A stretch of 64,000 bases of DNA from Paragordius varius (taxonomy: Eukaryota; Animalia; Nematomorpha). Shown piece by piece: positions 36,856-59,958 of this stretch; the stretch's first letter is position 1; each line of letters begins with the position of its first letter. The notes below the pieces were generated by a model, which worked only from the letters and a program-made list of their open reading frames with translations, searched no databases and was not told where the DNA came from. Where the stretch lies: assembly GCA_964247055.1 (NCBI GenBank), contig OZ176050.1, positions 2,356,001-2,420,000 of the forward strand, read 5' to 3'. The position numbers and the translations under genes were made by a program.

Positions 36856-38664
36856 ATGATGATAGAAAGTAGCCCTCTATCTCAACTAGTAAATGTATGC
36901 AACAACTTTAATCAACAATTCAATATAGTCGAACAAAATAAACGGAAAAAAACGCTCGCTAATATACTTGATGAGGGTGGAATTGAAAATATGCATTCTA
37001 TTACAATGTCATCAGTATACTCAACCGGTGGAGACCTAAACCAATCACCGCCCAAAAAAGTGTGTTTTCAAAGTGGAAATATTCTGACAACTGCTAATAA
37101 TTCTTTAAATTCAAGAATCAGATTAAAGGATAAAAGCACATCCGGTGGATCAAATAAAAGCACCTCTACCATTTTACATCACACAAATTATCATAATAGT
37201 AATAATCAAAATAACATAAAAAACCAAAGCAATGATAGGGCTACTGCAAAGGAAAGATTTGGTATTGGTTTTACGACTGAAGCTTTTGGTAACAATGATA
37301 AACCACACAAGATGAAAAATTTGAAACCGACTAACGATATGTTTGATAAATCAATGTTTAACGGGGTTGATATGGGAGAATTTTGGAAGCGATTTCAGAT
37401 GACATCTACTTTTAACTACTGGGCACCTCCCATGTTTTTAAATCATAGTAATAATGGTTTATCATTTTCGCAACAACATGTCTCCAACAGCACCAATTGT
37501 AAAGATTTAAGCTCCAATAAATGTCCATGCGTCTTTTGTAATCAAAACCTTGAGTTAGAAAAATTCTTACCATCCTACAATGTAGCACATCCATTTTCGT
37601 CAACGATTTGTGATAACAAGATTTTAGATATGAATTTTATGAATAATTACAATTTTATGTCTCCAAATTATCCATCACTCGCCGCACCTCCACACCAAGC
37701 TAATTCGTTTCAAATGTTTTATCAACAAATGTTTCAAAATCATCTTCTTACTCAATACTGGATCCTATTTGGTTTATTGAATTCACCCAACAACAGTCAA
37801 AATATTAAGGGTTCAAATTTTATAAATCCACTCTCATTTAATAATAATAATAATGTAATAAACAATATTGTTGCTAGTCAAACCTCTTCCCAAGGACTAA
37901 TTTGCTCAAATGACAAAAAAGTTTCCCCCGAATCAATATCGCCGCTAAAACCTATAAAATTAGTCGATGATACTAATCATGCCAAAAGGAATTATTGCAA
38001 AATTTCAAATTTCACTCCACAACATCATAATTTTAACTTTTTGAGTAAAAATTATAAATATTCAAACAATTCGCAAAACGTTTCCGGGAAAAGTACAGGT
38101 ATAAATAACTACAGTCTAAAAAAGAGAAATAAAAGTTCCCCCATTTATTGTCAATCTAATATGATGCAAACTGAATATCCAGATCGAAGTACCCAAAATA
38201 TTGAAACAGCACATTTTAACTTGTATAATCGGAGAAATACAGAAACACCCACATTAACTTATGGTTTAAACCCACAAATTAATAAAACAAATTTTAACAT
38301 GAGTAAGGATAATAAAAATTTTAGCAACAATATATCCTCTTATTCAAGACAAAATTTAAAAGATAACTACCCCATTTCATTCCCTTTGTTTCCACCATCC
38401 AGGCAGAATAATTTAACAGATCCCAATATAAACCATAGATTGTTTTTAGAGGCGGCTTATAAAACGTATTTCCTGAATACGTTGTGTGGGCCGTCCGGTC
38501 AGACATATGAAAACCTAACCAATCCATTGTTTAACTCAACAAATTTATCATTTTCGATGCCTAATAAAGATTTAGAATTTTTGCATCCGCCTTTGGGTAA
38601 ACTTTTCCCATTCATTACCAATGGCAGTGGTGAATTTAATTTTCCACATCAACAAAGTATATAA
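36856..38664 (+). CDS. 602-aa Asn/Ser/Gln-rich, probably disordered protein of unknown function (single long coding exon; may be a terminal exon)
   Basis: A 1.8-kb stop-free frame in DNA where other frames close quickly. An in-frame splice acceptor (tctag|gat, exon start 36829) lies 27 nt upstream of the ATG, and AATAAA at 38765 lies ~100 nt after the stop. No domain recognised. Confidence 0.75.
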   Translation: MMIESSPLSQLVNVCNNFNQQFNIVEQNKRKKTLANILDEGGIENMHSITMSSVYSTGGDLNQSPPKKVCFQSGNILTTANNSLNSRIRLKDKSTSGGSNKSTSTILHHTNYHNSNNQNNIKNQSNDRATAKERFGIGFTTEAFGNNDKPHKMKNLKPTNDMFDKSMFNGVDMGEFWKRFQMTSTFNYWAPPMFLNHSNNGLSFSQQHVSNSTNCKDLSSNKCPCVFCNQNLELEKFLPSYNVAHPFSSTICDNKILDMNFMNNYNFMSPNYPSLAAPPHQANSFQMFYQQMFQNHLLTQYWILFGLLNSPNNSQNIKGSNFINPLSFNNNNNVINNIVASQTSSQGLICSNDKKVSPESISPLKPIKLVDDTNHAKRNYCKISNFTPQHHNFNFLSKNYKYSNNSQNVSGKSTGINNYSLKKRNKSSPIYCQSNMMQTEYPDRSTQNIETAHFNLYNRRNTETPTLTYGLNPQINKTNFNMSKDNKNFSNNISSYSRQNLKDNYPISFPLFPPSRQNNLTDPNINHRLFLEAAYKTYFLNTLCGPSGQTYENLTNPLFNSTNLSFSMPNKDLEFLHPPLGKLFPFITNGSGEFNFPHQQSI

Positions 38665-48509: not shown

Positions 48510-50501
48510 AGTTAACTAAAAAACGCCTCAAAAATATTTTGATTGTCAAGAAAGTTACAAAATTTTTATTTAAAACTGTCTTAAAGGCACTGAAAATCTC
48601 TGTTTTTTTCATGCATTCCCAACCTTTTTAATAGCAAGCAAATGTCCGTTCAAATTTAATTATATTCAAACAACTGATACCTTTAATATATTGTTTTATA
48701 GACGAACCCAAATCTCATTTAGACACCAAAAAATAACTATAAAGATTAAACATAAACCTGAATGTACATGTATTTATAACATTTTAAAATCTCTTAACTT
48801 AAATCATAGATATTTCCCTATTTATTGTGTAATTTTGCTACATCAACTAATAGACCAAACATATTAATGTATTTCTTATCGAGCTTACCAAAATAGATTA
48901 ACTTTATATAAAAAATCAAACGATTGACCTTTGCTATATATCTATTTATGTATAATAAAGAAATATTCAAGCAAAATTTTGTAGAAACTTTATTGATTTC
49001 TTAATCCTATGGTAACACATATATTTTGGTTGACAATAAAACGTGAAAATTTACTTATTTATCTGTGTTTATGTTAACAACTAGCAAAAATCCATTTTTT
49101 AATTATGCTATTATTATCTCTTTTTGGAATTATGTGGTCGCTCCTATATTAACATATTAATGAGGATTTAGCCTTTTTACGTCTAGGTTATGAATCAATA
49201 TCCCAAATTTTTTTAATTTTGCGACAACTTTAGGTCTATAAAAACTTTTAAATTGTATTAACATGTAAAAATAAGTCACACATCTACTTTATAGAAGGGA
49301 TATCATGTTTTTCGCACAAAACCTAAACACACTGTATCAAAATTGGTGTTTCTTATTATATAATTTATGTATTTATATTTACATCTCCACATAATGTTTT
49401 TCTATAGTACATATCTTTCATATATTCTGAATTTATTAAAGGACTTAAACGCTATAAACATAAAATTTTGATTTTGAATGATATGTCTATCTTACTCCAT
49501 ATATTATATCATTCATTATTTTGGATATAATCTCATGTAAAAGAATTGTTTAATACATATATTTATTTTATTTTTTAATATATATATATATTCCTATTGA
49601 ATATGATTGTGATACACATTATAAAATTTGAATAAATCTTATAAAAATGTAATTGGCTCTATAAATGTTGGTATTGTTTTTGCATAATATTGTTGAGACA
49701 AATAAATTTGGTGATGTCACTTTTTTAAAAACAGAATAAACTTTACTTTTGATGGTAATTGGAGTTTTCTATAAACAATGATCTAGAAAATTCATATAAT
49801 TTCTCTAGATTACCGGTTTTTAGCATTATTTATCATATTTACGGCTTTAAAATCAATTTTTGGGATACCACCACACATTTCATTTATTTATATTTGTTAC
49901 ATACGTTTTTTAAGTTTGTTATATGAAAAATTTGGGGTGTAGACGGCAACAAAATAGCTAACCAACCCAAATTTTGCTTATTAAGACATTTTTAAATTAT
50001 TCAATAGAGCGACAGGCATTTTTCGGTCCGAAAAATGATTATTCTTTTATTAGAACTCTCTTTTTAGATTATTCATGAGAAATTTCGTAACATATCTCTA
50101 GCACGAAATAATAATCATGGCATCTATTAAATTTGTACAAAATTTTGCTTGGTCGAGAATTTTTTTCTTAAAATAATCCATTTTTTAAGATTTTATGTTT
50201 CTGCTATCATTATATGATTTTTCTGATTCCCTTATGATATTAATGGGCCTTTACACAAAGGGAATCTTAATTTAAAGTAAAAGTGTATGCTCTATAAATA
50301 TTAATTTTAAGTTATTCAATTTATTGTATATTAAATAAAATATAAAATATAAAAATATAGCATAGTTCACACGGATAACATTATTTGCGGAATTGGAGGG
50401 TGACTAAGTTAGGCCATTGAGGTGTATAATAATATCATGTGGCATAAAAAATCATTTTTAGAATTTATATTTAAAAAAAATATTTTTTAAAAAAAAGAAT
50501 C

Positions 50502-53500
50502 CTATTTTTTCCATTTTCGAAACCATTTTTCATTCTTGGCATAATTGGAACTGAATTGACGCGATTGTGAGGAACTTTGCTGGTTTGAAGAAAATTTTTC
50601 TGTTCCGTCTTTTATCTTACGTTGACCTGATCTTGATTGAGAATCTGCATTTTTGTGTCCTATTTTTGGATTTACAGTAAAAATTGAAATTATACAAATA
50701 AAACGTAAAAACTAAAAGACAAATATTCTTTTAAAAAACAACCATACTTTTTTTAACCTTGATGTTTCCTACATAAACAGTATGAAAACTTTTTTAAAAC
50801 ATATAAATAAATGAGTGTGTTACCGAACATCTTTATTCCTTACTAGCGTAAATCTCGTGCTGCTACGCAGCCCGAGGACTTCGGAATTCTGGGGGGGGAG
50901 GCTATTTGAAAAAAGGGACACTAAAATGATCCACATATGTGAATTATTTCGAAACATAAATAGCTATGATCTCATAGGAATTTCAAAACGGTGCATTCAT
51001 ACTAATATATTGTTTACTTGGGCGAAAAATAGATTCAAAAAATTATTTTTGTGGACTTTGTTTTTTTAAAAAATGGCATTTTACGGGGGGAGCGGGTAAA
51101 AAGAGGGCGGCCTAAATTAAAAAAGCGAGCCGACTATGTTCGGCGCAATCGAAAATAAATAAACAAAAATCATATTTGAAACTGAATGGTCCAACACATT
51201 CTCCGGGAAATTGTCTCAAAGACACGATTAGGGACTTATGTTTTCGAAAAAAACCCATTTTTTACACGGGGTGGACCCGAACTGGGGACCTATATCAAAA
51301 AAAAGGGCGATACTGTCGGGGCATTCATTAATGATTATATTTTTTCAATATTTGGATTTGATTGGGTCCACCGGTTTTCCGGAAACAGATCACAAAGTTA
51401 CATGACAAATCAGTTTTTAGCGGCTAGCTCCCTACCCAGCAGCTATCATCAAAGATACGCTTGACTAATATTTTTGCCTTTTAACAGGGAATACATAGAA
51501 TTCTTAATGAATTTTTACGGTCTCATACCTAGCGAAAAATAGATTTAAAAAAAATATTTTTGTCGAGTTTGTTTTTTGAAAAAAATGGCATTTTACAGGG
51601 GAACAGGTAAAAAGAGGACCTAAATTAAAAAAGCGAGCCGACTATGTTCGGCGCAATCAAAAATAATTAAACAAAAATCATATTTGAAAATAAATGGTCC
51701 AACACGTTCTTCGGTAAATTGTCTCAAAGACACGATTAGGGACTTCTGTTTTCGAAAAAAAACCGTTTTTTACACGGGTTGGGCCCGAACTGGGCCTATT
51801 TCAAAAAACGAGCGAAGCTATTGTCGGGGCATTCATTAATCTATTTTTTCGATATTTGAATTTGAATGGGTCTACCGGTTTTCTGGTACCAGTTCACAAA
51901 GCCAGCATTTTCCATTTTTATAAATATATAGATTAGGCAAGCAACACAAACGATTATATGTTTATCTTTTTGAAAAAATATTTGTCTTTTAATTTTTACG
52001 TTATGACCGTATATTTCCAATTTTTAGTGTTAATTTTTGGATCTTTAAGCTATCCATCAAAAATTTTTATTAAAAAGGATTTTGTATTAAGTATATTTCA
52101 TAAAAACTGCACCATTGATTAATTAACTACCAAAAGCTTCATAAGTTTGATTCTTATAAATCAATTTTGTGAGTTTAATTCACTTGTAATACAAAATTTA
52201 ATCAACGAAGCACAAATTATTTAATAAATTTACTACTAACTTGTGCGAAATATTGGTTATGTGCCTTACGACTGCCATATTTTAAACGCAGAGACAGATT
52301 TATTAAATATAATTTATCTTTTTTTTGCTCCTATATTAGTTTTGCGTGACACTTTTATAAATATGACACAAATGTTTGCGGATTTTGACGCAATATAAAA
52401 TAAAAATCGATATATGTTTTTTGAGTCTAATCAACACTTAAATTAATTTACTGGGGGTAGGAAAGCGTTACAATTGTCAAACAAATAAGTATAGTTCGAA
52501 TAGCCATAACTACCAAAGGTTAATCTGTTAAGTATAAAAATATAACAAGATACAGGGACACTCTACCAAGATAAAATTTAAGGCAAGTCATCAACTTGTT
52601 ATGTAATATGTAATTAAATAAAGACTTAAATGATTATTGTTTAGCTTCACATAGTTTATGGAATGAAAAGATACAGCAAAATATTCGTTAAAAAAATGCA
52701 CAATAATTTTAATGTTGAATTTTGGGAAAAATTGATAAATCGCAAAATTTCCATATATAGTAGTATCAGGTATAAAAAATATGTTTTTTATAATATATAA
52801 AAAAATATTATTCATCGGCTTCTACACGTTTGGCCCATCTCCCAGGTAAATGAATGCTTTGCCAGAAAAACTAATTGTTTTACCAATGTCTTCGATATTG
52901 CGAAAAAATATTTCAATTTGCTTTTCACTGATTTTGCTGGATGCAGATCATTGTCATGTAGCAAAATCACTTTGCCATCTTTTCTGGCCCATTTGTTTAT
53001 TTAGATTGATGCATGGTTTAAATATTATTATTGGTCGGTGATAGCGTTGTGTGTTAAAACTTTCACACGGTTGTTTCAAAAGTTCATAATACACAAAACC
53101 GCTCTGCTCCTACCAGGCACAGAGCATGGTATTCTTGCAGAAGCGAGATGGCCAGTTGATGGACTGGTTTGGCAAGATGAAAGCTACTATTTTTTCCGCT
53201 TTGGGTTTAACAAAGCCACTTCTCATAACCCGCCATATTTCGATACAAAAATGGTCCTTCGTGACGTTAAAGCAGGACTTTACATGTCACTCTGCGATTT
53301 TCGATTTGACATTTATTCGAATTAAGTGATACCGAGTTTGTTGGTCCTATAGCTGGTACTGATTGTTTTTTGTTATACATGTGATTCTTCCGTCAATTGC
53401 TGTTGAATTTGAGTTGAGTCATCATCCAATAAATCTTGCACTTGATCTTCGCAGTTATGTTTACCAGAGCGCCTACTGTCTCTCATATTGGAAGACTTTT

Positions 53501-56074
53501 AAATTTTTGCAACCATGCATCACATGTTTCAACCGATTGAGTATTCTTCGATATATTTCCACAAGCAAACGATGACTCAACAGCCTTTTTCTGATAAAAT
53601 TAGAATAACCATTCACCGCAAATGTTTTTTGGCACAATATTCGACACTACCTTTAAACACAAATTTGGGTGTTTGTAGTTTAATAACAGATGAAATAGAT
53701 GAGTTGTTTCAAATTGATCATCTGCATCCTTTTCGCTGACTTCTCTAATTCAAACCGAATGACTTCTGTACCAGGTATATAGTTGTATCAAACCAAAAAA
53801 GGAGTTAGCTATTCGAATCGATTTAAATTGTTCTTAATATAGAATGCGTGCCAAATTTAGGGTCAAAAATGTATTTTTAAGTTTTCGTGTTTTAGCGAGA
53901 GGAGCTTACTATTTCAGAATCTGAAAAAAAAATTAAAAGTGCACAATGCCAAATCGATTTTTGTCGAATACTAACCGAAAATAATTCTTATTCTTTAAGT
54001 ATTAAAATGACCACGCTATATACCATCCAAACTCTTTACGGTGTGCTGAATCTAAATTGAACATACATGAAAGCTGTTTTATTTGTAACATCAAGAAAGT
54101 TAGCGCCTAACTTAGGTGTAAAACAACATTTTCTTTATAGGATGAGGAAACGAGATTAAAGCTCCTATTAGGCTTTGTTAAAACCGAATGGTAACTAAAA
54201 AATCCAAGTTCAAAAACTGTTTTAAAAACCGGAACTGAGATCCCGGATCTAAAAAACGATTTTATAGATTATTTTTTATTTTTTATAAAATTTGAACCTA
54301 ATTTTTATTATCTCCGTTTAAATCATTATATTTTTGACATTTTCGAAACCAATTTCGGAAAAGCATGAAAACGGAACAAGAATTTTTTGGCATAAAATTT
54401 TATCCAAACTCGAACAATTAAATCTTTTTGTTTCAAATATTTCAAAATTTGATTTTAATTTATAATACGAATAACGGTAAAGTCAAATTGTAGCATAATA
54501 AATTCATAAATAAAAATCTAAGTGGACTGATATGTTTTTTATATCGTGTTAGCAAATAGTTTTACTTTTTCAAAATGATGGTTTTTGAAAAAAAATAAAG
54601 CATTGTTACCTATATCATATCCATTTTGTGATTCATTTTGTCGTCTGCGACCATGAGCGCCTTCCTTAACATCCCAACTTCGTTGTCTTTGATACTGTCT
54701 CCGATATTTTTGTTCGTTTCTGTCTTGTGGATTTCTATTTCTTTGCGAAGCATGATGGTTTTGAACATGTTTATTGCCATTGGCATTTCGAGTGCGTGCA
54801 CGTAATTCACGCTGTATCCTTAAGTTTCGTTTAGCCATCCGTTTTATGAGTTTATTAATTTCTGTGGGTGAAACTATAATATTTTCTGTCATATATGAGG
54901 GTAGTTCTAAGTTTTTATTATCATCATTGTCATCAGCATTCACATGAACTTCGATTCCAACTGGTTCTACTTTGTCAACGCGATTTTTATTATGATGGAT
55001 TTGAGTAAATACTAGATTGCTACTATGTGAATTAATATTTGACACCGGTAGGCGTATAAATGGATTATTTATAAAATTATGGGTTTGATTATTTGTTGGT
55101 GAGGCAGGAGCTTGGTAAATGTCAAATCCTCGGCTAATATCCAATAATGCTTCGGCTCGATTTGAAACATCCCCGTCATTCATGGTTAAAAACTTGGATT
55201 TTTGAAACAGATTGGTAACTTCTTTTGGTCGATAGCTAAATTTCTTCTTATCATAATCGGAACGGTAATTGGATCTTAACGGTTTGTCGCGTATTCGGAA
55301 TTTAGCCATCTTTAGGGCGGATAACATTTTTTTCTGTTCATCATTATTGGTAGTGGCAACTTTACCGTGTAGCTGTTCATTAACATCACCACCATTTTTG
55401 TATAATGAATGAGATGAGGTAAGAGATAAACCCTTACGGGCTGCTGCCTTGAATCGCGTTAAAGGGTCCTTCTTCAAGTTCCACAAGTAATAATCCTTTT
55501 TGGCCACGTCAGTTTCATCATAAAATTTGGAACTGTGGCCTTCGGACAGCGCTCTTTGCTTGTAGTATCGTGCAAGTTCCTTGTAACTTTTTCTAAAAGC
55601 AAAATCTGGTGTCGGAGCTTTCCATGACGTGGTTGGTGTACTAAAATGCCGAGATTGATCCGTACTCGTTGGCATTGTACTTGACCATTCTTGTGTTGTT
55701 GATGTTTTTGTTGCGATATGCGTCTGATCATTTAAATCTTTCTTATTATCTTTTCGTTCCTTTTTACGCTGACGTTTAGATTTTGATTTCGATTTCTTCC
55801 TATTATTGTTATTACGTCCCTTTTTCCGGTCTTTTTTGTTTCGATTAGAAGCTGTGGTGGTTTGAGGATTGGTTGTCGAAGCAAGTCTTGTAGAAACCGG
55901 TGTAGAAGATTTATGGAGAAAAGTAAAAACCCAAGTGGTATAAGCCGAAGTAACTGTCGATAATTCCGATTTCTTAGTGACGGCTTTCAAGTCTTGTACG
56001 TTAATGGTTAAAAAGTAAAAAATTGCAAAAATAAGCGGGATATAGATTGAACTAATTGAAATTGTTTTGAACAT
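50502..56074 (-). CDS. Uncharacterised secreted basic protein (~540 aa): signal peptide, Thr/Ser-rich and polybasic segments; 2 coding exons inferred
   Basis: Long exon 56074-54610 (ATG at 56074, hydrophobic leader MFKTISISSIYIPLIFAIFYFLTINVQDLKA). Phase-1 donor ATAG|GTAAC at 54609 joins a phase-matched acceptor AAATAG|GA at 50660; exon 50659-50502 is open to TAG. The large exon is well supported; the 50.6-kb exon is inferred. Confidence 0.7.
50842..51933 (+). mobile_element. Helitron/HINE-like non-autonomous element with an internal ~510-bp tandem duplication
   Basis: Begins ACTAG followed by the hairpin CTCGtGCTGC-TAC-GCAGCcCGAG (50854-50876) and ends TTTTATAAATATATAGAT. 51020-51385 repeats at 51530-51900 (e.g. 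AAAAAAGCGAGCCGACTATGTTCGGCGCAATC twice). Confidence 0.55.
52764..53777 (-). pseudogene. Decayed, internally deleted Mos1-like mariner element with both ends
   Basis: Minus translation with frameshifts: SNIVPKKHLR, HRLLVEIY, ETCDAWLQKFKS, RRSGK..EDQVQDLLDDDSTQIQQQL, YEKWL, NPKRKK, KNTMLCAW*EQSGFVYYELLK, KVILLHDN, FFWQSIHLPGRWAKRVEADE*YF. Degenerate TA|(C/T)CAGGT-type ends at 52764 and 53777. The YSPDLAP region is missing. Confidence 0.85.
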
Positions 56075-57370
56075 TGGGACAAGCAAAGTATTTTTCACTG
56101 GGTAAAAAAAAACCGGAATTAATAAAATATATGCAATAAATTATGTATGCGCGTGGTAAGTTAAGCAGAAATGATTTAAAGAGTTATATCTATATGTCTA
56201 CAAATGTCAAAATATCAACTACATCATATACGCATGCAATAAATTTGAAAATTTGTAAATTTTACAGGTATTAATTAAAATATTTAATGTATTAAGAGAT
56301 ATATATTATTATATATTAAGGATTAAATATTTTCATATCTTAAGACATTTATAATATATATTATAAGGTGCAGGTACAAATAAATTTTTATTATATTAGT
56401 GAGTGGATTATCAGAAAATCTCTGTTTTGCTAATAAAAAAATTAATCCCTTAAAAAATTCTTAGCTTATTTAATGAAAATGATAGATGCATAGTTGTAGA
56501 GACGAGAATATAACTAATTTGCTATAGTACAATTTTTTTATTTTTATTTAATTTTACTTAAAAATAATTTTTTTTATAGTTCATTAAGTAACAACTACTA
56601 TTAAAACATTTATATTTTATATATTAAAATTAATTTAATTAGAAGAAATATCTGTCCAACAAGCATTAACCTTTGAACTCCCTATCATATATATAATTAT
56701 CAAATATGCACTGAAAAAATATGATTGTGGAATTAAAACTGGTAAAATGCGCGTCTCATAAAATACATTATTTTATTGTTCAATAAAACGTTAAATGATA
56801 TATAGAGATTTTAGGTGACACTTTTTTTATCAGTTAAAAGTATTATATAAAAAGTTATCAATTAATGTTTCCTCCGATCATATAATTTTTGTATTTTTAT
56901 TTGAATCAGAAAGTTAACAAAAATATACATATTGACTGTGTTTGTCCAACCACAAACGGTCACATGTTATATTTAAAACTTAAATGACCCTAAATCTCTA
57001 AAAAATTAATAAGATTTATTTTCAATAATAAGTAAGTAAAGGTGCAAAAGGTTAAGGAATGAATAAATTATTCACTTAATTATTATTATTATTGTTGTAA
57101 TTGTAAATCGGGGGAGAATGGTTGTTAACGCCCTCTCTACCATTCAACTTTCAAATGGGTTTTTAATTTTATTATAATGAATTTTTTTTGATTAAATGTC
57201 AACTGAAAAGATCATAAGAGTGGAAAATAGGTCAGCTCACCTGCCAAATAAATAATCTCGATTGCAAAAGAGTGGTACGGATATAATTCAACATGAACTA
57301 AAAAATTAACGTGTTAGCCTTCAACTCTAATTGTGTTAGCTGTTAGGAGAGAATGATCCATTTCGAAGGG

Positions 57371-57377
57371 TATAAAA
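57371..57377 (+). promoter_or_regulatory. TATA box of the His/Gly-rich secreted protein gene
   Basis: gggTATAAAAggg is flanked by G-runs in otherwise AT-rich DNA, about 185 nt upstream of the ATG at 57556. Confidence 0.55.
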
Positions 57378-57555
57378 GGGCCAACATTTTTTCACACATT
57401 CAAAATTTTATCAATATTGTTTTTACAATATAATTATTTATATTTGACCCTTTAACCTCTTTACGTGAGATTAATCATTGTTTCTGCGAATTTCACGAAG
57501 AACCCAAAACCAAGATTATATTTGGACGCACATCATTGAAAACCATTAAATTATT

Positions 57556-59083
57556 ATGGCAACCTTGCGAATTCTACCAATTACACTGCTCGCTACCTTA
57601 GTAATTGTATTGATTCACATCTCTTGGTTTCCCTGTTCTGCTCACGATTATTCAAAAGCCAGACCAATTTTTGGCTCACCAGTGGTTCATGGGGGTAAAG
57701 GAGTTGCTATTATAAGTGGAATTGGAAAGGGGAAAGGCAAAGGCATTCGACCCATATATCCCATATTTAATGGACCCTTCAATTATCACAAAAAGAAGGG
57801 AAAAATAAGTCATCACCATCACCACGGGCACGGACATAAAGGAAAGTATGGAGCTGTTAAGAAATATTATTACAGCTCTACGAGTTCAACAACAAGCAGT
57901 TCCACCACAACGGATAAAGTTAAAGTCAAGTATATCATTGTCAAGAAATTACATGGACACCATGATAAACATGGACACGGACATGGTCACAGCAGTATAA
58001 TTGGCGGAAAGCATGGAAAAGGCGGAGCTATAATAATCAATGGACTAGGATACCAGAAAGGTATAAATTGTTTAACTCATTTTTGTTGTAATTAGTTAAT
58101 ATTTTAGTTTGGCTGTTGGATTAGATTGATATTTTTTAAGGAACGTAACATGTATTGCGGTAAATCTAATTAATAAGAAAATTAAATGATAAATTGCCGA
58201 TTAATATGTTTCAAATCAAGCATATGCAAGGATTATTATAAAACAGAGAAAAACACATGACATATTTTTGATTAATTGTCAGATAGTTATGTATATTTGG
58301 GAAACGAAATTTTGTCCTTTAAAAAGTTTTTTTTTAATTTATCATAGCATGTTCCTTATTTTGGAGTGAATTATGGCAACAGTTTATAAATGGCTTAAGA
58401 AACCTTTGTACCCGTTATAACACGGCCACCATAAATTAACACCTATATAAAATTGAATAAATTCTGACAAACATATGAAACGCTTTTCTCAATTTTTGTT
58501 AAATTCAAATGGGCAAACAATTTAATTATATTAGGAAATCTCGATTGAAATTTGAAATTCTATAATGGTGTATAACTGGTATGAATGCGTTAATAGCTTA
58601 ATTAAATTAATTGTTTCTGGAATAAAAATAATCAAAGGTTCTATTTTAATGTTAAAACTTTTTTGTTCATTTCAAAATTGATTGATTGATTTATTCGACT
58701 TATAAAATTATATTCCATAACGATTGAATTTGTATTGAAAGTGTATTATTACTTTGTTGAATGTCGCGAAGAAATCGGATATCCTCATATTCAGATATTT
58801 TAATTTATTTTCAATTTGTGTAATGCAAGCATGCACATACAACGAAGTCAAATCTAAAAAACTTTTTACGAATACCATTATTGATTTCATTTCGAATTAA
58901 AAAATACATTGACAATTTTTATATGTTATTGATTAGCTATAATAGGCGCTAAAATTATCAAACTATAAAATATTTAATGTTGCAATCTTATAAAAAAATC
59001 AATATTTAGCATATACTATATATGGACCAGTCTATGTTGATGAAAAACTTAAAATATTACAAAATTAAGTCAATATACTCGAA

Positions 59084-59114
<31 letters not shown>

Positions 59115-59958
59115 TCATCACACAGGTAAAGATCTTTTGATAAATGATGATAAAAAGAGCAGTGGTGTTGGTTCTGATGCGGCCGTCAAAGATTTGCTGT
59201 CCTCTTTGTTGGTTCAGGACAAACAAAAAAATCAAATTGTTAAACGTGACATTTATCCCACTCTAAATAAACTTATAAAGCACAAAAAGAGCAAGGATGT
59301 CCGGGAGGCCGTTAAGCGCCATGAAAATTCACTTAAATCCAAAACTAACAGAAATTATAAAAGTGGTCGATTACTAATAAACGCAAATAGGGTCAATGAT
59401 GACACTAAAGACCACAAAAATGTAGTTTTATCTCCCAGTGGCAAAGATAAAGGCCCAAAATTCAACAATAGAAGATATAGTTATACGAATACGCGAAAAG
59501 TGGTAAACCCCGAACAACTTGGGTACAATGATGACAAAAATTTAGAGAATCGTATAAAAGCACGCGAGGAAGAACAGCTTAGAGCTTTAAGCGGGCCTAG
59601 GAAACCTTTATGGGCCGGAGCTAAAAACTCTGACTTAGGGTATGGCTCAGCCATTGAAAAGTTACCGTTTGGCAGTAACGTCAAGGGCGATTCAGGCCTC
59701 GAAAATAATCATGTGTTTGGTAAAAAGAATTATCCAAATTTGGATATCATTAAACCCGAAGAGTCTTTAGAAGAGCACCAAGACAATGAACAACGCAAAA
59801 AAAGTGGAGAAGATGGTGTTAAATCCATTCATAAAGGCGAAGATCAAGATTTGAAATCTGCCAATAACAAGGGAGACTCAGGAAACTATAATGGCCACCA
59901 TCATGGAGAACATTTACATGATATTTTAGATGATTTACCATTCCCTATATTCATTTAA
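57556..59958 (+). CDS. Uncharacterised secreted His/Gly/Lys-rich protein (445 aa), 2 exons
   Basis: Exon 1 57556-58060 (signal peptide ending about PCSA, then HGHG/GKG-rich domain) ends at donor AAAG|GTATAA. Exon 2 59126-59958 starts after acceptor CACACAG and is in frame with the 273-aa ORF. Total 1338 nt = 445 codons + stop. TATA box upstream. Confidence 0.82.
59091..59114. repeat. (TA)n microsatellite next to the 3' splice site of the His-rich gene
   Basis: Uninterrupted TA run ending ~10 nt before the acceptor AG at 59124-59125. Confidence 0.8.

Follow-up and report, generated by a model that had tools for sequence, protein, structure and literature searches.

Among invertebrate proteins, a general resemblance to the pair considered here is offered by the mucin-like or disordered proteins of coats and glues, such as those of insect salivary glue and the nematode surface-coat mucins, which combine a signal peptide with Ser/Thr-rich stretches, low complexity and a fast turnover of sequence with kept composition, and which in most families carry Cys-rich end domains. 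Two other described systems are relevant as well: the Gly/His-rich proteins, represented by Nvjp-1 of the Nereis jaw and by plant and arthropod peptides, and the precursors of prohormones and neuropeptides, which have a signal peptide, no disulfides and numerous basic pairs. A locus with likeness to all three was analyzed in the hairworm Paragordius varius. It lies at positions 50502–59958 of the window, i.e., the whole stretch of 64,000 nucleotides taken from contig OZ176050.1, and it contains two genes that diverge from a short interval and are called here the minus gene and the plus gene after their strands.

Judging from the predicted proteins, it is rather probable that the locus consists of two real genes, neighbours but not detectably related, each encoding a signal sequence followed by a disordered, strongly cationic and Cys-depleted chain with an extracellular polycationic role. 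By sequence comparison, the minus gene is not a species-level orphan and adds a new member to a family without a name, found so far only in hairworms, and the plus gene still appears to be an orphan. The parts of both genes are as follows.

54610–56074, minus strand: exon 1 of the minus gene, with the ATG at 56074, 488 codons plus one base
55226–55729, minus strand: conserved, Tyr-rich core of the minus protein, residues 116–283
50660–54609, minus strand: intron of the minus gene, 3950 bp, phase 1, after residue 488 of 540
50502–50659, minus strand: exon 2 of the minus gene, 51 codons plus the stop, TAG at 50504–50502
56075–57555, no strand assigned: divergent intergenic interval, 1481 bp between the start codons
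57556–58060, plus strand: exon 1 of the plus gene, 168 codons plus one base, encoding a 29-residue leader and then a His/Gly/Lys-rich domain
58061–59125, plus strand: intron of the plus gene, 1065 bp, phase 1, after residue 168 of 445
59126–59958, plus strand: exon 2 of the plus gene, 276 codons plus the stop, within an open frame that spans 301 codons

Concerning the minus gene, its exon 1 is contained in an open frame of 519 codons (DNA with ~27% GC) and encodes, in this order, a signal-like leader, a Ser/Thr-rich stretch, a cluster of 39 residues dominated by Lys, Arg and Asn (residues 77–115, NRNKKDRKKGRNNNNRKKSKSKSKRQRKKERKDNKKDLN), the Tyr-rich core, and a basic, disordered tail rich in Gln, Asn and Arg. 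The intron is canonical, with the GT donor at 54609–54608 and the AG acceptor at 50661–50660, and exon 2 adds a basic Ser/Gln-rich tail with KWFRKWKK as the last residues. The spliced model yields a protein of 540 amino acids, with no internal stops, an isoelectric point (pI) of 10.3 and no Cys.

Database searches and structure predictions were run exon by exon, and the joined models served for the composition and shuffle statistics. When exon 1 of the minus gene was compared by phmmer with 1.84 billion representative sequences, one relative was found (E = 2.4e-13). This was CAK9296316.1, an unnamed protein product of 523 amino acids from a 64-Mb contig of Gordionus sp. m RMFG-2023, which is the sole member of its cluster. 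In a pairwise BLASTP comparison, both proteins were 38% identical over 191 amino acids (query residues 116–283, E = 1e-23); two blocks of the core were strongly kept, RALSEG..S.FY.E.D..K.DYYLWNLK and SNYRSDYDKKKF.YRP, and many of the core Tyr residues were invariant. The two proteins align from Met1 of both, across both hydrophobic leaders, and exon 2 matches the final 46 residues of CAK9296316.1 in an ungapped alignment, with the same Trp-x-x-Trp tail (E = 0.002). So, the start codon and the 3.95-kb intron of the minus gene receive independent support from the relative. In the reciprocal check, the best match of CAK9296316.1 in this genome was the minus gene. A weak match of CAK9296316.1 at C1:2876984–2877391 was dismissed as noise, being antisense to an open reading frame (ORF) of 913 amino acids. 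A search for paralogues in the same genome, run with each exon, with CAK9296316.1 and with the two-sequence profile as queries, returned self matches only.

The comparison between both members of the family indicates which features are kept. CAK9296316.1 resembles the minus protein in its leader, Ser/Thr-rich stretch, Tyr-rich core, W..W tail, net charge and scarcity of Cys. The figures are very close: Lys plus Arg make up 19.6% of the minus protein and 19.7% of the relative, Asp plus Glu 9.4% of each, the net charges are +55 and +54, and the Cys counts 0 and 1, respectively. On the other hand, beyond the core, the C-terminal half included, the two sequences are barely alignable, and the 39-residue Lys/Arg/Asn cluster corresponds to a gap in CAK9296316.1. 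This kept composition with diverged sequence is the pattern expected for a disordered protein selected on its bulk properties. The relative, itself uncharacterised, gives no function.

Pfam searches gave only noise below the gathering threshold for the three exon pieces and nothing for CAK9296316.1, a profile search of the PDB gave no match, and the ESM Atlas no usable match for the minus protein. In the first-pass annotation of this DNA, made from the letters and their ORFs, the two proteins had been described as unrecognised and lineage-specific. The former term is correct in that neither matches a Pfam family, and it falls short for the minus gene, given the Gordionus relative found at E = 2.4e-13; the latter applies to the minus gene at the level of hairworms, not at that of the species.

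Concerning the plus gene, the spliced model encodes 445 amino acids with no internal stops and a pI of 9.8. The intron starts with GT at 58061–58062 and ends with AG at 59124–59125, and exon 2 is not a separate gene, since there is no Met in its 276 codons. A run of TA dinucleotides occupies 59088–59115, just before the exon-2 acceptor, and the frame is open from there into the exon. The leader is followed by a His/Gly/Lys-rich domain of 139 residues with HGHGH runs, and this by a disordered region of 276 residues rich in Lys, Asp and Asn. The His/Gly/Lys domain (57643–58059, plus strand) shows mirror-like blocks in the order GGKG..II, HHHHHGHGH, a Ser/Thr run, HGHGHGH and II..GGK, and the alignment of the exon-1 domain with its own reverse scored 152 versus 79.5 ± 14.3 for shuffled sequences, about 5 standard deviations above. 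Its richness in His, Gly and Lys and its HGHGH runs recall the Gly/His-rich proteins, and by analogy with them the domain could bind metals or membranes. The differences are that no homology to such proteins is detectable, and that the domain, of 139 residues, precedes an unrelated and longer disordered region.

Word-based protein searches gave no matches for exon 1 of the minus gene or exon 2 of the plus gene, with a tool that also missed CAK9296316.1. A neighbouring ORF of 602 amino acids did not retrieve even itself, so the collection lacks the proteins of this genome, and the blanks of the word-based searches are weak. The matches of the plus protein in the ESM Atlas were Med26/TFIIS-N clusters (0.86–0.88, fewer than 170 shared features) and were treated as chance.

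Several properties are shared by the two proteins. Strongly hydrophobic windows were found by hydropathy only in the first 25–30 residues of each. The leaders were judged by eye from hydropathy and the −3/−1 rule, which gave a canonical result for the plus protein, with a cleavage-like site CSA|HD, and an ambiguous one for the minus protein. The single Cys of the plus protein is residue 27, within the leader and ahead of that site. About 10 Cys would be expected per protein from base composition, and the depletion is significant (P ~3e-5 and 5e-4). AlphaFold2 models were mostly disordered, with a few isolated helices, both for exon 1 of the minus gene (mean predicted local distance difference test score, pLDDT, of 44) and for exon 2 of the plus gene (mean pLDDT of 50). 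The gene anatomy and protein features reported in the first-pass annotation were thus largely borne out: two genes diverging from a 1.48-kb interval, N-terminal hydrophobic leaders, mature chains with no Cys, basic proteins and one phase-1 intron with GT–AG ends in each gene. In the 1481-bp interval, a canonical TATAAAAG occurs at 57371–57378, ~180 bp upstream of the ATG of the plus gene; read directly, the interval contained nothing distinctive beyond it.

It seems reasonable to propose for the minus family a layout formed by a signal peptide, a Ser/Thr-rich stretch that is probably O-glycosylated, a basic core rich in Tyr, a basic region that evolves fast with its bulk charge kept, and a Trp-bearing C-terminal tail. 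Both proteins would most likely act outside the cell as a polycationic matrix, coat or adhesive of the cuticle, the egg string or the larval cyst wall. Their bulk charge would serve to bind polyanionic partners, and cross-linking through Tyr, Lys or His might take the place of disulfides. The likeness to coat and glue proteins lies in the signal peptide, the Ser/Thr-rich stretches, the low complexity and the fast turnover with kept composition. It is worth noting that the two proteins differ from them in showing no sequence similarity to them in Pfam, word-based or, for the minus gene, HMMER searches, no long tandem Pro/Thr/Ser (PTS) repeats on inspection, and no Cys-rich end domains.

Some points weigh against this extracellular polycationic role. 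Secretion and a structural role outside the cell are inferred from sequence alone, and high basicity combined with disorder is typical of nuclear proteins as well. The minus leader is ambiguous: it has a hydrophobic region of ~20 residues and a weak cleavage site where, by eye, small residues are not clear, and it could be a signal anchor as well as a signal peptide. As to the plus gene, its splice lacks the support of any relative, and its orphan status is tentative, no relative having been found in a word-based search, with a tool that misses true relatives. A first alternative is that the proteins are not secreted, the hydrophobic N-terminus being a membrane anchor or the models incomplete, so that they would be intracellular, for instance nuclear, disordered proteins. 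The features of the minus leader and a composition resembling that of disordered nucleic-acid-binding proteins agree with it. Nevertheless, CAK9296316.1 keeps the start Met and the leader, in a form shorter than that of the minus protein and followed by a typical SLS|SKK site; the plus leader is followed by the canonical CSA|HD site; and Ser/Thr-rich stretches immediately behind a leader are typical of mucin-like regions outside the cell. This alternative, be it a membrane anchor or an intracellular protein, is improbable.

The position of the Lys/Arg/Asn cluster behind a signal peptide suggests a second alternative for the minus protein, i.e., that it is an effector secreted into the arthropod host, with the 39-residue cluster working in host cells as a nuclear-localisation signal. 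The idea fits with the life of hairworms, which develop within insects and change the behaviour of their hosts. However, as the gap in the Gordionus relative indicates, the cluster is not conserved across the family, and no similarity to a host protein or to a known effector appeared in the Pfam, word-based and HMMER searches. An effector role is improbable.

A third alternative is that one or both proteins are precursors of prohormones or antimicrobial peptides, cut at dibasic sites. It had been noted at the outset that such sites are numerous, and processed bioactive peptides had been proposed as possible products. The number of KK, KR and RR pairs is indeed high, 26 in the minus protein and 14 in the plus protein; signal peptides are present; and the His/Gly/Lys domain resembles cationic Gly/His-rich defence peptides in composition. 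Against this, the counts do not exceed what composition predicts: 20.6 ± 3.7 pairs were expected in the minus protein (p = 0.09), 14.3 versus 16 observed when its basic cluster was left out (p = 0.34), and 12.8 ± 3.1 in the plus protein (p = 0.42). Amidation-type G[KR][KR] sites amount to one per protein, and no repeated peptide units flanked by dibasic sites are present. Furthermore, what is conserved in the minus family is a core of 170 residues plus the C-terminal tail, that is, long blocks not bounded by basic pairs, instead of short peptides lying between them. So, the abundance of basic pairs stands as a count, the basis for proposing processed peptides is removed, and a precursor role looks quite unlikely for either protein and, as prohormones, unlikely for both.

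The first-pass annotation had also joined the two genes into a system, through a motif of the form PT(E)[IL]NKLIK. The two strings are located as follows.

54839–54871, minus strand: SPTEINKLIKR motif, residues 402–412 of the minus protein
59254–59283, plus strand: YPTLNKLIKH motif, residues 43–52 of the exon-2 piece of the plus protein

Both strings are present, and each lies at the start of a predicted helix. In the AlphaFold2 models, the minus motif is at the start of the best-predicted helix of exon 1 (residues 403–445, with pLDDT of 72–83 over residues 411–440), and the plus motif coincides with a short helix (residues 42–52 of the exon-2 piece). The resemblance is nevertheless within chance. 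In a BLASTP comparison of minus exon 1 with plus exon 2, the motif was the only match (E = 0.78), and the longest exact word common to the two proteins was NKLIK, of five residues. A shared word of at least five residues appeared in 62 of 400 global shuffles (15%) and in 99 of 400 shuffles within local windows (25%), in agreement with the caveat, attached to the motif from the beginning, that AT-rich codons favour Asn, Lys, Leu and Ile and that it could be due to chance. Overall similarity between the proteins was also at the level of shuffles (Smith–Waterman score of 47 versus 45.4 ± 6.3). The introns are not equivalent with respect to the motif, lying ~77 residues after it in the minus gene and ~42 residues before it in the plus gene. 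With similarity at chance level and different intron positions, paralogy of the two genes found no support. Conservation of the motif in orthologues had been set beforehand as a test, and the PTEINKLIK string is absent from CAK9296316.1, the only relative found. That both proteins have NKLIK is a coincidence, arising from a composition rich in Lys, Asn, Ile and Leu at the places where two amphipathic helices begin. The place of both motifs at a helix start fits with a Pro-Thr cap followed by amphipathic sequence rich in Lys, Ile, Leu and Asn, which is common under AT-rich codon bias, and the similarity of the motifs at the DNA level follows from the same residues being encoded with the same bias. 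That the genes form a diverged paralogous or a functionally coupled, co-regulated pair, with the motif as a functional element of an undescribed secretory system, is very improbable, in spite of their head-to-head arrangement over 1.48 kb, their common features (leader, basic and Cys-free chain, one phase-1 intron) and the helices. The claim that made this locus stand out, a two-gene system defined by a motif, does not survive testing.

The 3950-bp intron of the minus gene contains two further elements.

50670–52034, no strand assigned: element of 1365 bp with inverted ends of 68 nucleotides, 82% complementary
about 52812–53640, minus strand: decayed mariner-like transposase, in ORF pieces LLHDN...HPA, e.g., LLHDNDLHPAKS

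The 1365-bp element includes a tandem duplication of ~510 bp (51022–51332 and 51532–51840, 78–95% identical) and stops only 9 bases short of the acceptor of exon 2, which makes the element the source of the branch site and the pyrimidine tract. The mariner-like fragments have the same orientation as the minus gene. In the same intron, 54320–54355 contains a near-copy (25 of 27 bases) of the 3′ end of exon 2 (50494–50529), which encodes KWFRKWKK and the stop. It is located ~255 bp into the intron, with no usable frame, and could be either chance or the relic of a former terminal exon placed nearby.

Concerning the surroundings, the window has a GC content of ~23–34%, in line with the 26.93% of the published Gordionus montsenyensis assembly, and it holds intron-split genes of animal type, i.e., a CD98hc-like gene, a neurocalcin-like exon and a Rho-GTPase exon. 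The neighbouring open frame of 602 codons at 36856–38664 (plus strand), rich in Asn and Ser and with no match in the word-based search, is possibly one large exon from a regulatory protein that evolves fast. Another signal-peptide gene, made up of small exons, lies ~19.7 kb past the end of the window (L004, 2727–4072, minus strand); it encodes repeats of the form GKGKGQQQ(S)W/Y together with an acidic tail and has a low-complexity GKGKGKG string in common with the plus gene. The region may hold several genes of Gly/Lys-rich secreted proteins. A search of the genome for the arthropod R&R cuticle domain and the nematode Col_cuticle_N domain gave no match; both searches were also blank in 14 control genomes, so this does not show absence.

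To our knowledge, few animal phyla have been studied as little as Nematomorpha, and their cuticle, the glue of their egg strings, the wall of their cysts and their host-directed secretions are molecularly uncharted. The minus family, present in two hairworm genera with charge and Tyr kept and the sequence otherwise free-running, may reasonably be considered as a candidate for a material of this kind. A more ambitious version of the extracellular polycationic role can be given only a low probability. According to it, the minus gene would found a group of hairworm-specific secreted polycations, whose Tyr core would be enzymatically cross-linked, through dityrosine or Lys-based bonds, into a phylum-specific material, be it egg-string glue, larval cyst wall or adult fibrous cuticle, and the His/Gly/Lys-rich neighbour would be secreted along with them as a hardening partner acting through metals or charge. 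If this were true, the Tyr-core and His/Gly/Lys proteins would jointly form a biomaterial system that does without disulfides and is unique to Nematomorpha. As for the minus family itself, it may be taken as a small example of selection acting on bulk composition.

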